Shown: one piece after another, positions 1,013 to 52,002 of the stretch
Layout of the letters: each line of letters opens with the position of its first letter
Numbering within the stretch: the stretch's first letter is position 1
From: Octopus bimaculoides
Lineage: Eukaryota
Length of the DNA: 64,000 bases
Assembly (NCBI RefSeq): GCF_001194135.2
Contig: NC_068993.1
Coordinates: 62,452,686-62,516,685 of the forward strand
Direction of reading: 5' to 3'
Notes under the pieces: model-generated
Databases searched by the model: none
The model's input: the letters and a program-made list of their open reading frames with translations, nothing else
What the model was told of the DNA's origin: nothing
Translations under genes and position numbers: made by a program

Positions 1013-1317
1013 AAAATTACTATTTTTAAATCTCACAACGAGAGATACTTTGGAGTAAAGATTGTTTGCCAACATATCATGGCAGTCCTGGTTTGGGACG
1101 AATGTTGCTGTAATTTAGTCCCAGGAGACATCGTCTCCAGCTGGCTATATATACTACGACACGATCTGTGTCCTTATATTCCCTAGTTCGAAAATATAAG
1201 GACACAGCTCGTGTCGTATAACCAGCTGGAGACGATGTCTCCTGGGGCTAAATTACAGCAACATTCGTCCTAAACCAGGACTGCCATGATATGTTGGCAA
1301 ACAATCTTTACTACAAA
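1013..1317. mobile_element. Fold-back element: about 130-bp inverted arms around a 12-nt loop; deleted relative of the 34.2-kb element
   Basis: Left arm 1049-1180 (gtaaagattgtttgccaac...ccttatatt) is the near-perfect reverse complement of 1193-1317. The arm and about 35 bp upstream of it (aaaattac...tctcacaacg) recur at 34199-34390. Confidence 0.85.
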
Positions 1318-2910
1318 TTAATTTTACATTGGGACAGATCAACGAGCGTTTCTGTGAATTACGCTAATATCAAATCTTCCAGCAAAAAAAAAAAAAAAAA
1401 AAAAAAAATTTAAGATTTTGCTTATATCAAATAAATTAAAATGAAATATTAATCAGTAGGAATCAGCAATCTTCAAATAGTAAGTTTAGTTTAGGAATAC
1501 TGCGAGAATTTTGAATATTTTCAAACCTGAAAACTCCAAGTCACAAAATTGATAGTAATTTGAAAGAAATTTAAATTGTACTCAGATATACGTCGTCGAA
1601 TATTTGACTTCGATGAACAGTGGGAATCAATTCTCTAATTTATGCCGCTAATGCACTGGAAAATAGACAAAATGTTGATGCCTACTATTTTACTTCAGTT
1701 TAGAAAATAAGGAATATTTATGTTTTCTTCTGAGGCATACATTACATAATTCAAATGAAATATATAAAAGTATATATCGATAATGGGAGGTTAAATATCT
1801 ACGCGTCAGATGCTCACTGTGCAGAAGACAGGTGTATTACATGACCTGTTTCTTTACAGATTTATTATTCAGTGCAACAGAGGTGGAGCTGGGATAGGGA
1901 GTGTGGACACAACTACTTCGTCATATTTAATAACGGCCCTACTTCATCTGAGTTCAAATCTGTCAAAAGTTTATTTTGCTTTTCATCATTCCGAAATCAA
2001 TAGAATAATTACTGGTCATGAACCAATTCGATTTAATCTTCAACAGATCTCCTTCTCCAAATCTGTCGTCTTGTGCCGATGCTAAAAAGCATTATTTATT
2101 GTGAGCTCTGCTTATCCCTTTTATGTATTTATTAACGATCGATTATTTAATCAGAACTAATCGATAAATATAGATTTATTAATAAATAAAGTAAACGGCA
2201 ACGAGACTTCTGAGATTTCTAACCTCTCAACTTAGAGAATGCAGTAAATTAGAATCCAAAATTCTGTTATAGAGAGAAGCACACCTGTAGGCTTCGAACT
2301 TGTGTTATAGCTATATTCCTTTTAAATTCCCATACAATATCTTAGGAAACGCATGAAAGTCTCACTTTCTCATTTCCCATTCTTCTAAAGAGAATGGTGG
2401 CTAAAATTTTAAAATTCTGGATCTCTCTTATTTTGGAAGCGGTTGATGTATTACACTTGTGGCCGGGTGACTGCCCAAGTTGCCGGTATCTTGAGCCGGC
2501 CCTAATTACACCCCCACTCCGCGGATTAACACACCTCCGCACCCACTCGTTCCTTAGCGAAGTTTGCTTTGTTGCAGACACTCTAACTTCGAACAGCGCT
2601 TAGCTTAATCTCATACTTTCTTGAAAACCTCCAAATAATAACTAAAGCACATATTAACACATTTCATGGCTCCCTGAAAAGTTATCGGTCAAACTAAAGG
2701 GTTTGACCCGAGCAAAAACAACAAAAGAAATTGTGTAATAGGTGTAAAACAACATATAGTAAAAGAATATGAAAAAGAATGCGCTACGTACACTTTGAAA
2801 GCAAGCATAAACCCGCCTTCTTGAACAACATTAGCGCCAAAAGATGTCCTTTGGAATACACAATTGTACTTCCGGATGTTATTGAGGAAATGTTTCGACT
2901 CTGTAGTTGT

Positions 2911-2976
2911 GCGAATTTTCACCTATCGATGGGCGTTTTGGAACGTAACACCTGCGATAGTCGAGGGATAACTGTA
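2911..2976. mobile_element. Solo terminus of a Tigger/pogo-like (Tc1-mariner superfamily) DNA transposon
   Basis: gcgaattttcacctatcg...ggaacgtaacacctgcgatagtcgagggataactg followed by TA; the reverse complement starts CAGTTATCCCTCG, the typical Tigger/pogo TIR start. No partner end seen. Confidence 0.55.
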
Positions 2977-3562
2977 TTATAGTTGATTAAAAATTCTTTT
3001 TGTCCCATTACATTGTTTCAAACTGCAATTAAATGTACGTTAGCTGTTAGACTGAATAGTTTATACATACACTGAGCTTCGTTTTTATGAAGAAAACGCG
3101 GTAGCTGTGTTTTGATTGCCATTGAACGTAGCTCTGTCCTCACATGGATAATGTGAAGCAAAACATCAACAACAAAATAACACAACAATCAAAGAGATTT
3201 CTTGGTAGATATATTAAAAAGAAAATGTTTTGTATATTTTATAGAAAATGGAGAGTTTTGAAAATGACAGTAACGAAGAAAATATCAAAAATACTAAGAA
3301 TTGAAGTCACGTCACAGATATGGCTTTGCAATCATAGACTAGTCTATCTCCTATTATCTAACAGATTCCAAGAAATCTTGCATGGTTGAAATAACTAAGA
3401 AATGCAACTCCTCTTTCAATACAGTCGTTAGTTCCATTTCAACTGCTTAGCAACACAAGATTAAAAGACCACCTCTCTTTCTCTTCTTCTTCACATACAG
3501 CATAGCATTCTCTTACGCTTTCTTTTCTATTTCCCCATCTCTGACTCTCATTCATTTTCTCT

Positions 3563-48800: not shown

Positions 48801-49386
48801 AAATGTCTTGATACAGTACCAGGCAGTGGCTCTCATGGCTTCCGATCTTAACTGATTGGAAGTGTTATTATGTACATTGTTTTGTCTTTGTAAAAAGATG
48901 GGATATAGCAAATATTCTGGTCATTACCAGAGATGTGCTTGTCAGTTGCTTGACCGTAACCTGTTGAGCATGTCCCTTAGTTGTTGACGATATGTGCATC
49001 TCTGATCACGTGCATAAGAGATGGGGGAGCATCATGGTCACGAGAGGAATTCTTTGGAGTTTGAATAATTCACCTCTGGAAACGGGTGTTTCGTTCAACA
49101 TCAATGAAAAACCTTTATTCAAGGACCATTTGAAGAAAATTCTAATTGGGTCCCACCTGCACGATCATGCGGTCTTTATCTTGATATGAGATCACCATGT
49201 CACGTACATATGGCTGCGATGCATGTGCCTGGTGTACCCTTATCAGATGGGTAATCATGAAGATTATACTGGGCTTCGTATATTGTACCCCAGTGTCATT
49301 CTGATGGCATGCATTGCTCTCTCTCCCAATGATGATGATGATGATGATGATGATGATGATGATGATGATGATGATGATGATAAGTT

Positions 49387-49548
49387 ACAGAAAACGAGAA
49401 AGCAACCATACTCTGGGATATACCAATAAACACAGACTGAGAAATTAAAGCCAATAGGCCAGATACAGTTGTCAGAGATCATGAAGGAAAAAAATGCATT
49501 CTAATTGATGTATTAATACCAGCAGATGACAACGTTTCTTTAAAAGCT
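49387..49548 (+). pseudogene. R4/Dong-type non-LTR retrotransposon restriction-like endonuclease fragment
   Basis: TENEKATILWDIPINTD*EIKANRPDTVVRDHEGKKCILIDVLIPADDNVSLKA carries the RPD...IDVxIP motif of RLE-encoding elements; one in-frame TGA. Confidence 0.88.
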
Positions 49549-51870
49549 TGATACTGAACTATTAGGGAACGAGATGTTTGTTCATCTATTTCTATCACTG
49601 GTTGTAATGAAATCTCTCTAAAAGTNNNNNNNNNNNNNNNNNNNNNNNNNNNNNNNNNNNNNNNNNNNNNNNNNNNNNNNNNNNNNNNNNNNNNNNNNNN
49701 NNNNNNNNNNNNNNNNNNNNNNNNNNNNNNNNNNNNNNNNNNNNNNNNNNNNNNNNNNNNNNNNNNNNNNNNNNNNNNNNNNNNNNNNNNNNNNNNNNNN
49801 NNNNNNNNNNNNNNNNNNNNNNNNNNNNNNNNNNNNNNNNNNNNNNNNNNNNNNNNNNNNNNNNNNNNNNNNNNNNNNNNNNNNNNNNNNNNNNNNNNNN
49901 NNNNNNNNNNNNNNNNNNNNNNNNNNNNNNNNNNNNNNNNNNNNNNNNNNNNNNNNNNNNNNNNNNNNNNNNNNNNNNNNNNNNNNNNNNNNNNNNNNNN
50001 NNNNNNNNNNNNNNNNNNNNNNNNNNNNNNNNNNNNNNNNNNNNNNNNNNNNNNNNNNNNNNNNNNNNNNNNNNNGGGGAGGGGGAGGAGGAGGAGGAAG
50101 AAGAAGAGGAGGTATTAAGCAAAAATCTCAAACCGAAAGAACGATGAAAAGTATGTCAAAAAATGGCGATTGTTCTGTTTAAATTATCAATATTACCGAA
50201 GCTATCATATATCAATTTAGAAAACGGCTGATTCCATTTAAAGCTTTACAAAAAGATTTGTTTCAGGTTGTACATGGGAGCATACGACTAGATTTTAGTT
50301 TTAAGGGTAATCTATACAGTTGCATGGAAACTATATTATATTCTATGTCATTATACTCATATAATCAATATGGACTGACTTTTCTAAGGCGTATTATAAA
50401 ATTTCAATGCATCTTTTAACAGTATTAAACCTAGTGAAGAGCTTCAAATGTCTGTCATATACTGCTATTCACCATTCAGCTGCTGCCAACCGGTTATCGT
50501 TTTGAGAATAGAAATGTGTAAACAATACTCTTGGTTTCTTTTATATCTTCATATGACTGAAGATATTATTTGACACAAACTGTAAGTAGATGCTGTTAGT
50601 CAGAAGCTTTATATAACAGTATATGACAGGAAAACCATTTGTTCCACGTGACTAGATTCATTAAGATTCATAAAAAACGAACGCTGTTATGTTCATATTA
50701 TATTCTGTTATTAATACTTAAGTGTTTCCCTTTTTTCACACCATCATTCTTTAATGTGATACCTGAGCAGCCCTACTAGATTCTCCCATGCGAATACATT
50801 ATCTGATCCACAGAAGAATTTTTTTAAAAAATCATTAATCTCAATCGGCTAACAGCCAAGATTTATGATCTCATTAGTCTCACAACAATGTATCGATGAG
50901 GAATCTAAACAGAAGCAAGACTACCATGAATTCTGCTCACACTTTTCATAAGTGCCATCCAGTAATTATATTATTAAATACCATTGCTAAAGAACCCCAC
51001 ACATCGTCAGTTACTTCGGTAGATAACCTCCCAGATAAGCCTAGTCAGACGATGGAATTCAACAGAGTATTTTCTAAATTATATTTCCGTATGATTAATA
51101 TGGATATAAATGGTTTGAAAGACATCATACAGTCTACTGTATAGAAATTAATTATATTTTCTATATAAACCTACAAAATATGTACACGGTGCATGGCGAA
51201 CGCTGCACGTGAGGGCCTAAAGTCTTTCATGGTGAGTTTATAAAGCTTACGGATGTTACCGTCATTTACTAAAAATTACGATTAACAGATCAAACGTTGA
51301 GGAGCGTTTATATCGATCTTTATACTTTTGTTGATAGCTTAGGATAATTGCTGTTATATTAAAGGACAAGGTAATAAGTGTCCAAATAGATATCAAAATC
51401 ATTTGCGTTTTCGTCGTAACTTAAAAGAAGTGTATTAGCTGTGTGTATTTAGAAGATATTTCCACAAAAGAAAGTCGGCATTTATGCAGGCGATTCAATG
51501 TTGTTTTTTCTTTAAAAAATCCTCTTCTGAAATAACGTGCAAAACTTTGAGAAGTCCAATCAGGTAATCATCCCCAAAAAGAAATCACTTGAACATACCT
51601 GCCAATTGGCCAAATGCACGTAAGGAATAATTTCAAAACAAATACGTAAATGGCAAGTAAGTCAATCGATGCAACATCCTAAAACCTGGGTTGATCCGAA
51701 GACAACGTCTCTGAGCTGCTATTCGATATCTGAGATAAGAGCACGGGGGGGGGGTCTTCATTAAACCAAAAACGGTTGAGAAGTGGCCATGTAAATTGGA
51801 TAAGAGCAACTCTCGATTCGACTTCCCACCGTTCCTAGTTCGTATGTTCGTATGCTAATGCAAATAAATA

Positions 51871-52002
51871 TATTTACATTATTTAAATTTGATGGATGTT
51901 TGTGCTCATCTTGTTTGGTGTTAACACAACGTTTCGGCTGATATACCCTCCAGCCTTCATCAGATGAGGGCAAATATCCGTCAAATGTAAATAATGTAAA
52001 TA
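51871..52002 (-). mobile_element. Fold-back mini-element: 41-bp inverted arms (36/41 identical) around a hammerhead core
   Basis: Arms 51871-51911 and 51962-52002; same family as 4053-4126. Confidence 0.85.
51923..51966 (-). ncRNA. Minimal type-I hammerhead ribozyme motif (stem I shortened by the inversion)
   Basis: Minus: CAT CTGATGA A GGCTG-GAGGGTATAT-CAGCC GAAA CG T T GTGTT; AACGTT palindromic stem III; GUU cleavage triplet. Confidence 0.7.

Follow-up and report, generated by a model that had tools for sequence, protein, structure and literature searches.

Does a hammerhead ribozyme that lies beside an inverted repeat determine where that repeat begins? The question is raised by a 64,000-nucleotide stretch of the Octopus bimaculoides genome (contig NC_068993.1, positions 62,452,686 to 62,516,685 of the forward strand; hereafter the window), in which an initial annotation had seen a window-wide population of small elements combining a ribozyme with a fold-back, at eight hammerhead-like sites. 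Our reading, with a probability of roughly 0.8, is that the window holds relics of at least three lineages of Penelope-like elements (PLEs), present as 3'-end copies that were made by target-primed reverse transcription, at two loci head-to-head, and in which the hammerhead is a passenger. The relics are ordinary repeat debris, that is, further copies of a known kind of element and not a new system.

The window has a G+C content of approximately 33%, is AT-rich and dense in microsatellites, and contains 18 runs of N. There is no long open reading frame in it outside simple repeats and, together with the composition, this gives it the appearance of non-coding eukaryotic DNA. The gaps nearest to the features described here are at 38422, 26326, 49626 and 4647, and all confirmed motifs and arms are more than 100 nt from any gap. 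The two longest inverted repeats listed by a repeat finder (4621-5591 and 26288-26513) were discarded as artefacts produced by N runs and a microsatellite.

A strict descriptor of the type I hammerhead was used to scan the window. In the descriptor, the 5' box reads N3-UGA-N-N8-A, with positions 3 and 8 complementary and 0-1 extra base allowed; helix II has at least 4 bp and a G-C closure, and is accompanied by GAA, H17 and a helix I of at least 3 bp; helix III begins with A, ends with U and is either a palindrome or a hairpin. Exactly three matches were found, at 37989-38028(+), 51966-51925(-) and 25009-24959(-). Dinucleotide-preserving shuffles (n=1000) gave a mean of 0.008 matches and never more than one in any shuffle. 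In addition, 17 decoy descriptors with permuted core boxes, applied to the real sequence so that its natural hairpins were kept, had no match at all. Of the eight sites first listed, three are genuine minimal hammerhead ribozyme motifs, a result far beyond chance. The excess over shuffled DNA that had been predicted is seen with this descriptor but not with the bare CTGANGA box, which occurs 23 times in the window against 25 +/- 4.6 expected. When CTGANGA is followed by GAAA within 6-45 nt, the count is 10 against 5.1 +/- 2.1 expected, so that about half of these pairs are due to chance, which fits the false positives among the sites originally listed. A relaxed descriptor matched approximately 0.6 times per window by chance, alike in shuffles and decoys.

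Four of the other five sites, 3948, 5764, 13525 and 34425, fail as hammerheads. At 3948, CTGATGA straddles the loop and one arm of a palindrome with 14-nt arms (3928-3966) and helix II is absent, as it is at 34425 and also at 5764, where the box reads CUGAUAA with loss of G8. The site at 13525 has both boxes and an ACUAGU palindrome but no helix I, and its helix II, of only 4 bp, is not flush with the core. The fifth site, 27655(-), is ambiguous since it satisfies the relaxed descriptor only, at the chance level given above. A further match to the relaxed descriptor at 42427-42377(-) has a U3-A8 core (UUGAUAA), a helix II of 3 bp and a hairpin helix III; it too is at chance level and is probably not real.

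The full conserved core (C3 U4 G5 A6 N7 G8 A9...G12 A13 A14, the A15.1-U16.1 pair and H17) is present at 37993(+) and at 51963(-), these being the positions of C3. At 25002(-), a G3/C8 swap keeps the 3-8 pair and the other core positions are canonical. Helix II of the first motif is present in its minimum-free-energy fold. As originally noticed, all three motifs have an extra, unpaired base between A9 and 10.1 (U at 37993, A at 51963 and U at 25.0 kb) and a palindromic helix III (AUAUAU, (A)ACGU(U) and AAUAUU, respectively). Helix II consists of 5-6 bp closed by G10.1-C11.1 in each case (GGGAU/AUCCC, GGCUG(G)/CAGCC and GUCGC/GCGAC), and helix I spans 3-7 bp. According to Cervera & de la Pena (2014, PMC4209133), PLE minimal hammerheads are marked by an additional base between 9 and 10.1, a G10.1-C11.1 pair, a palindromic 15.2-16.2 and the combination of a long helix II and a short helix I, and all four are found in the three motifs of the window. 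In metazoan PLEs, these ribozymes occur as many solo copies and as opposite-strand pairs 100-700 bp apart, with extreme sequence diversity within a genome; they cleave poorly and as dimers only, the monomers being inactive (PMC4209133). No same-strand partner with which a dimer could form is present in the window for any of the three motifs. Because of this, and because published monomers are inactive, the isolated motifs are probably inert relics, inactive or nearly so.

The link to PLEs is provided by the locus at 37.6-38.1 kb. Here, the minus strand encodes a fragment of a GIY-YIG endonuclease (EN) at 37937-37707, the translation of which contains ...CILTNCLIHDSSMCLRTFVVCYIRCSKYGNRYIDSTTRPLHVRIKEHLTTNASSFCRHLTRCGN... 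An exhaustive phmmer search (E<=1e-3) returned 213 homologues, the best with an E-value of 3.7e-13; these are proteins of 600-1050 residues in which the matching part is close to the C-terminus. When 10 of these homologues were analysed with Pfam, RVT_1 was found in 8 and GIY-YIG in 6, and this pair of domains defines the EN+ PLEs. Homology ends at approximately 37707, some 45 residues before the C-terminal end of the domain. The fragment is too short for Pfam, which did not match GIY-YIG on the peptide alone, and a word-indexed protein search with the 93-aa peptide returned no match, so that exhaustive phmmer was needed. No second such remnant was found in the window by tblastn.

The EN remnant is followed on the same strand, at 37.7 kb, by a decayed hammerhead, which places the ribozyme in the terminal, 3' region of the element. 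The 5' box of this hammerhead was lost at a deletion junction (37703-37707) and its GAAA is now GAAU. From 37702, the minus strand matches the plus-strand hammerhead, starting at G8, and its tail (37998-38073) with an identity of approximately 85% and, because of this homology, the locus is best read as two copies of one PLE 3' end lying head-to-head. The longer, minus copy runs from the EN half through an internal deletion, the decayed hammerhead and the tail to a (CA)n(TA)n microsatellite. The short plus copy consists of the intact hammerhead and its tail, with a 5' end that falls within 37938-37988. Both arms contain the ribozyme; they start 27 nt before the cleavage site, at G8. The decayed hammerhead, the adjoining EN remnant and a truncated copy at 4051-4126 (see below) had all been overlooked. 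A (C/T)GCATTG heptamer, preceded by TTATTA...TTT, is shared at 38044-38050(+) and 37652-37646(-). It lies 20-22 nt downstream of the cleavage site in both copies as well as in a related PLE family introduced below, and may be a conserved element of the region in which reverse transcription starts, the overall similarity of the tails being not significant.

The second head-to-head arrangement is at 51.9 kb. In minus orientation, the order is inverted arm (51999-51962), hammerhead, 16 nt and far arm (51911-51874). The arms are identical at 33 of 38 positions and have the common terminus ...AAUGUAAAUAAU; the copies are joined within the CUGAUGA box, where a GAUGA/UCAUC microhomology is common to both. 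Judged from its sequence, this fold-back is two 3'-end copies placed head-to-head, the shorter of which is truncated 17 nt after the cleavage site. The observation that the far arm begins with the 17th nucleotide past the predicted site was correct. A third copy of the family, 5'-truncated in the loop of helix II, is at 4.1 kb, 48 kb away. Two metagenome-wide scans with exact patterns, one for this family and one for that at 25.0 kb, gave 0 matches and thus no further copies. A 3' end that stays constant while the 5' truncation varies is characteristic of target-primed reverse transcription.

The 4.1 kb fragment (4051-4126(-)) abuts, head-to-head, the 5' end of the tRNA-like head of a short interspersed element (SINE; 4127-4190(+), GGCGTAGTGGTTAAGAGCGC...GAGTTCGATTCC). 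The SINE continues to approximately 4440, and parts of its body recur at 29521-29610 and 46938-47019. ARAGORN called no tRNA in the window, and the tRNA-like head is therefore degenerate. The abutment may reflect either a nested insertion or a joint insertion event.

Table 1. Coordinates of the hammerheads, element copies and other repeats in the window
Feature	Position	Strand	Description	Basis
Intact minimal hammerhead	37989..38028	+	UCUU-CUGAAGA-U-GGGAU-UUUG-AUCCC-GAA-AUAUAU-C17 (38024)-AAGG	descriptor scans
Intact minimal hammerhead	51925..51966	-	CAU-CUGAUGA-A-GGCUG(G)-loop-CAGCC-GAA-ACGU-U17 (51928)-GUG	descriptor scans
Minimal hammerhead with swapped core pair	24959..25009	-	UUUGUCA-GUGAACA (G3...C8)-U-GUCGC-GGUCUGAAA-GCGAC-GAA-AAUAUU-U17 (24966)-UGACAAA	
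GIY-YIG endonuclease fragment	37707..37937	-	N-terminal half of the domain	phmmer, tblastn
Decayed hammerhead	37672..37702	-	G8 onward only (GAUGGGACUUUGAGCCCGAAUUAUAUUAAGG)	alignment to plus copy
3' tail of minus copy	37619..37671	-	runs into (CA)n(TA)n microsatellite, TA run 37563-37607	
3' tail of short plus copy	38025..38073	+	homology to minus copy stops at ...CTCTTTTCACA	
Far arm, 51.9 kb fold-back	51874..51911	-	3'-terminal segment of forward copy; starts at 17th nt past cleavage site	
Inverted arm, 51.9 kb fold-back	51962..51999	+	inverted second copy of same 3' end, more severely 5'-truncated; abuts hammerhead inside CUGAUGA box	
Third copy of 51.9 kb family	4051..4126	-	5'-truncated in helix II loop; retains ...AUAUCAGCGGAAACGUUGUG and tail	
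Palindromic MITE-like copy 1	1046-1320		275-bp near-perfect fold-back; 104-nt arms, 95% complementary	
Palindromic MITE-like copy 2	34238-34564		89-92% identical to copy 1	
SINE-like eight-copy family	6514-6617, 17970-18133, 18209-18377, 18398-18613, 29271-29484, 36182-36347, 42820-42985, 57127-57267			
Second SINE family	53930-54183, 40124-40355, 32249-32363, 59318-59391		ACCACATGGTTCCGGG...internal (TG)n...CCACCATCGCTTGACAACCGATGCTGGTGTGTTTAC...GAATAAGTCCTGGGGTCGATTTG	

Further support for the PLE assignment came from a related family in another organism (ENA assembly ERZ21867824), of which 12 loci (L001-L012) were picked as close EN relatives. The EN of these loci is up to 71% identical to the window's fragment over the overlap. 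Multiple alignment gave the layout EN stop, approximately 240 nt, minimal hammerhead, approximately 55 nt and 3' end. The hammerhead of this family reads GUCU CUGAYRA U GAAGU UUU(U) ACUUY GAA AUUAAU U AGAC, and its extra U, 5-bp helix II, U17 and 4-bp helix I give it the architecture of the motif at 37993. Three of the five helix II pairs differ between the two by double changes that preserve pairing (GGGAU/AUCCC in the window, GAAGU/ACUUC in the relatives). Nucleotide alignment of the 37.9 kb 3' region to the 3' untranslated region of the family scored 30-43, where shuffled controls averaged 28 and reached 44-52 at most; as the scores are no better than the controls, homology of the untranslated regions is not claimed.

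Two side observations were made on these relatives. Among 18 copies of the family, one (L012) has CUGACGA as its 5' box, four have CUGAUGA and several others CUGACAA, as expected from deamination at the N7-G8 CpG in dead copies; one direction of this decay preserves the core and the other destroys G8. In addition, L007 (ctg121661l) carries two more canonical type I hammerheads, at 648-680(+) and 2489-2521(+), which have a real helix III hairpin (CUGAUGA GUUGU-UAU-ACAAC GAA ACAUUCUGU C...), are distinct from the PLE minimal hammerhead of that genome and could be retrozyme-like.

L001, L003, L007 and L010 each contain an inverted, 5'-truncated partner, and a local palindrome is present in L002. 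Counted from C3, the short copies of the related family start at -108, -66, -20, -4 and +16 and the axis of the L002 palindrome is at approximately -9; the junctions in the window are at +2, +5, +20 and +48. None of these boundaries, in the window or in the related family, coincides with the cleavage site, and their spread over about 150 nt is what strong 3'-biased truncation gives. A tight cluster of 5' ends 3-11 nt upstream of C3, seen in BLAST coordinates, was dropped once the multiple alignment had given -108 to +16.

These positions bear directly on the model first put forward for the window, namely that of tiny, non-autonomous elements whose inverted arm is copied from an RNA end made by self-cleavage. 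The element at 51.9 kb has a length of about 135 bp and three 3'-end copies within 64 kb, so the family may be abundant, and several junctions in both the window and the related family fall no more than 10 nt from the 5' edge of the core. An arm that starts at the cleavage site was nevertheless found nowhere, with an offset of +17 nt for the fold-back at 51.9 kb and of -27 nt for the pair at 37.6-38.1 kb, in which both arms contain the hammerhead, and across all junctions the offsets relative to C3 range from -108 to +48. Of the three fold-backs cited for the model, at 3.9, 34.4 and 51.9 kb, all are real inverted repeats, but only the last contains a hammerhead. Biochemistry on one PLE points the same way (Frangieh et al. 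2024, PMC11167929): insertion in vitro is equally efficient with catalytic mutants of the hammerhead, and RNA-seq has no reads that stop at the cleavage site. That self-cleavage sets the arm boundary is thus quite unlikely.

The preferred reading, relics left by PLE insertion, draws its mechanism from work on another PLE. Unlike R2 or L1, the purified protein of that element cuts and extends both strands of the DNA, and it starts reverse transcription internally, near the hammerhead region (PMC11167929). PLE insertions are typically 5'-truncated and often adjoin an inverted, 5'-truncated copy, and the described clades favour microsatellite targets (Craig et al. 2021, PMC8557442). In the window, target-primed reverse transcription would have started near the 3' end of the RNA and aborted early, leaving 5'-truncated copies that were dead on arrival. 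Each lineage would survive as its last 90-330 bases only, with the minimal hammerhead some 50-65 nt before the end of the insertion. If the protein cut and primed both strands, two 3'-end cDNAs would come to lie head-to-head, and their joining, apparently at short microhomology, would produce the look of a ribozyme plus fold-back. The hammerhead would be carried along as part of the 3' region and would not set the boundaries of the arms. Double-strand priming, early abortion and cDNA joining explain the pattern best, and a boundary set by self-cleavage is not needed.

Several points weigh against PLE relics as the source. No reverse-transcriptase remnant was found in the window by tblastn, and no direct tandem of pseudo-long terminal repeats (pLTRs) by self-BLAST or TRF. 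Six-frame translation gave no PLE coding remnant upstream of the sites at 25.0, 51.9, 13.5 and 27.6 kb. Since the 51.9 kb and 25.0 kb elements carry no coding remnant, we infer their PLE origin from the type and arrangement of the motifs only. The Rfam hammerhead models (clan CL00010) match none of the three motifs at E<=10 in slices of approximately 200 nt. Over the whole window, Rfam has no match at the gathering score, and at relaxed thresholds it matches microsatellite palindromes that mimic miRNA hairpins but no hammerhead family. As a positive control for the slices, a more canonical hammerhead in L007 was detected by Hammerhead_3 (31 bits, E 8e-4), so the three motifs are outside the curated models. 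This is in line with the 2014 study, for which a dedicated descriptor was needed (PMC4209133). Finally, the junctions near the 5' box (+2, +5, -4 and -9) are not specifically predicted by plain random truncation. Their crowding is a hint drawn from few copies, to which the requirement for a scorable hammerhead adds ascertainment bias. A folded ribozyme, or PLE protein bound to it, could make the reverse transcriptase stop or switch templates there, in which case hammerhead plus tail, about 100 nt, would be a preferred minimal product.

Two further explanations can be weighed at this point. In the first, the units would be retrozymes, that is, short hammerhead elements that are transcribed, self-cleave, circularise and are reverse-transcribed in trans by a PLE. 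Their ribozymes are of the same type (type I, palindromic helix III, dimer-dependent; Cervera & de la Pena 2020, PMC7229834), but the window has no head-to-tail tandem copies of hammerhead units of the 170-400 nt type by self-BLAST or TRF, none of its hammerheads has a same-strand partner and one locus has PLE coding sequence in cis, which makes retrozymes very unlikely. Least likely of all is that every motif is a chance match in AT-rich, hairpin-rich repeat DNA, for although CTGANGA is not enriched, Rfam recognises no hammerhead and five of the eight sites are at chance level or ambiguous, the strict descriptor finds 3 motifs against 0.008, the 17 decoy cores find none on the real sequence, one motif is linked to a PLE EN remnant and a decayed inverted homologue, and another has a truncated homologue 48 kb away.

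The motif at 25.0 kb, in which G3/C8 replaces C3/G8, has a helix I of 7 bp and all else is canonical. In its minimum-free-energy fold, helices I and II are formed and the core is unpaired. The chance expectation for non-CG cores is 0.008 per window, and no inverted partner of the motif was found in the window. That it is otherwise perfect, with a 7-bp helix I, argues for selection and not decay. Cleavage is partly restored in the laboratory C3G/G8C double mutant. A limited literature search found no description of a natural G3-C8 hammerhead, which is not proof of absence; the only natural core variant in the 2014 survey is U3-A8, in contrast to G3-C8 here (PMC4209133). As a single copy with no flanking PLE remnant, the motif may be regarded as a lead only. 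It is possible, if on the unlikely side, that it represents a natural lineage of G3-C8 hammerheads, that the ends of short PLE copies are concentrated at the hammerhead's 5' edge, or both.

The remaining fold-backs have a different origin. Those at 1.05-1.32 and 34.2-34.6 kb appear from their arms and mutual identity to be a palindromic family resembling miniature inverted-repeat transposable elements (MITEs) and unrelated to hammerheads. Descriptor scans of both copies (1046-1320 and 34238-34564) found no hammerhead core with helices. In the second copy, the right arm is partly replaced by a small secondary fold-back (34385-34418/34465-34501), and the CTGATGA at 34.4 kb sits in the loop of this internal palindrome (34385-34501). 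The termini of the family begin ...GTAGTAAAGATTGTTTGCC. With five of the eight sites unsupported as hammerheads, and with the 34.4 kb fold-back belonging to a MITE family that is also at 1046-1320, the proposed window-wide system does not stand. The proposed derivation of the hammerheads from PLEs is correct: PLE-type minimal hammerheads, an EN remnant at one locus and a PLE-like inverted arrangement at two loci support it, and the 34.4 kb fold-back falls outside it.

Other repeats are present in the window. The members of an eight-copy, SINE-like family are 75-91% identical and end in ...TTCTGCCAGCTCGCCGCCTT, and three of them are clustered at 17.97-18.61 kb. The second SINE family presumably resembles a very abundant octopus SINE, a likeness that would point to cephalopod DNA. 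Two 69-bp segments, 42970-43038 and 43049-43117, are 100% identical and flank a gap of 10 N (43039-43048; TRF period 79, 2 copies, 100% match); they are most likely a duplication introduced by assembly or scaffolding and not a real tandem repeat. The sub-threshold Rfam matches to miRNAs (mir-3149, mir-297, mir-1277 and others) were rejected as false positives, which arise from (CA)n(TA)n(TG)n microsatellites that fold as perfect hairpins; they are at 40449-40532, 14130-14215, 18728-18805 and many other places.

The analysis of this window has consequences for the reading of similar DNA. As a calibration, it shows that minimal hammerheads are recognisable by eye in raw sequence, yet about half of the co-occurrences of CTGANGA and GAAA in AT-rich DNA are due to chance. 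The fold-backs beside hammerheads are of mixed origin, some being PLE insertions placed head-to-head and others an unrelated MITE. The ribozyme by itself suffices to recognise PLE debris of a few hundred bases that Rfam models miss, which is relevant to the annotation of invertebrate repeats. If they were true genome-wide, a natural G3-C8 hammerhead and a preference of cDNA ends or template switches for the 5' edge of the ribozyme would be relevant to the biology of ribozymes and PLEs.

The Schistosoma Sm-alpha and Sj-alpha elements are SINE-like and carry hammerheads. The window resembles them in its short, non-autonomous retroposon context and in the tRNA-like sequence that adjoins a hammerhead fragment at 4.1 kb; it differs in that this tRNA-like head is part of a separate SINE on the other strand, with the hammerhead fragment outside it. 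With the non-LTR retrozymes of animals, which are small hammerhead tandem repeats that form circRNAs (Cervera & de la Pena 2020, PMC7229834), it shares type I hammerheads that need dimers and a likely relationship to PLEs, whereas it has no tandem units and its helix I/II loops do not have the canonical architecture for tertiary contacts.

The likeness to the minimal hammerheads of metazoan PLEs (PMC4209133) is closer. The motifs are of type I, with a CUGANGA...GAAA core, an extra base after A9 and a loopless, palindromic helix III suited to dimers; they occur solo or as opposite-strand pairs a few hundred bp apart, and the copies are strongly divergent in sequence. They differ from the main Schistosoma families in helix II, which has 5-6 bp here and 7-8 bp there (PMC4209133). 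In comparison with described PLE insertions (PMC8557442, PMC11167929), the copies in the window are extremely short (approximately 85-330 bp), are without a direct pLTR tandem and reverse transcriptase, and in the longer one an internal deletion has fused the EN coding region to the hammerhead at G8. The two are nevertheless alike in the head-to-head pairs of 3' ends, here at 37.6-38.1 and 51.9 kb, in severe 5' truncation, in having one end within (CA)n(TA)n and in the GIY-YIG EN remnant that is retained in cis.

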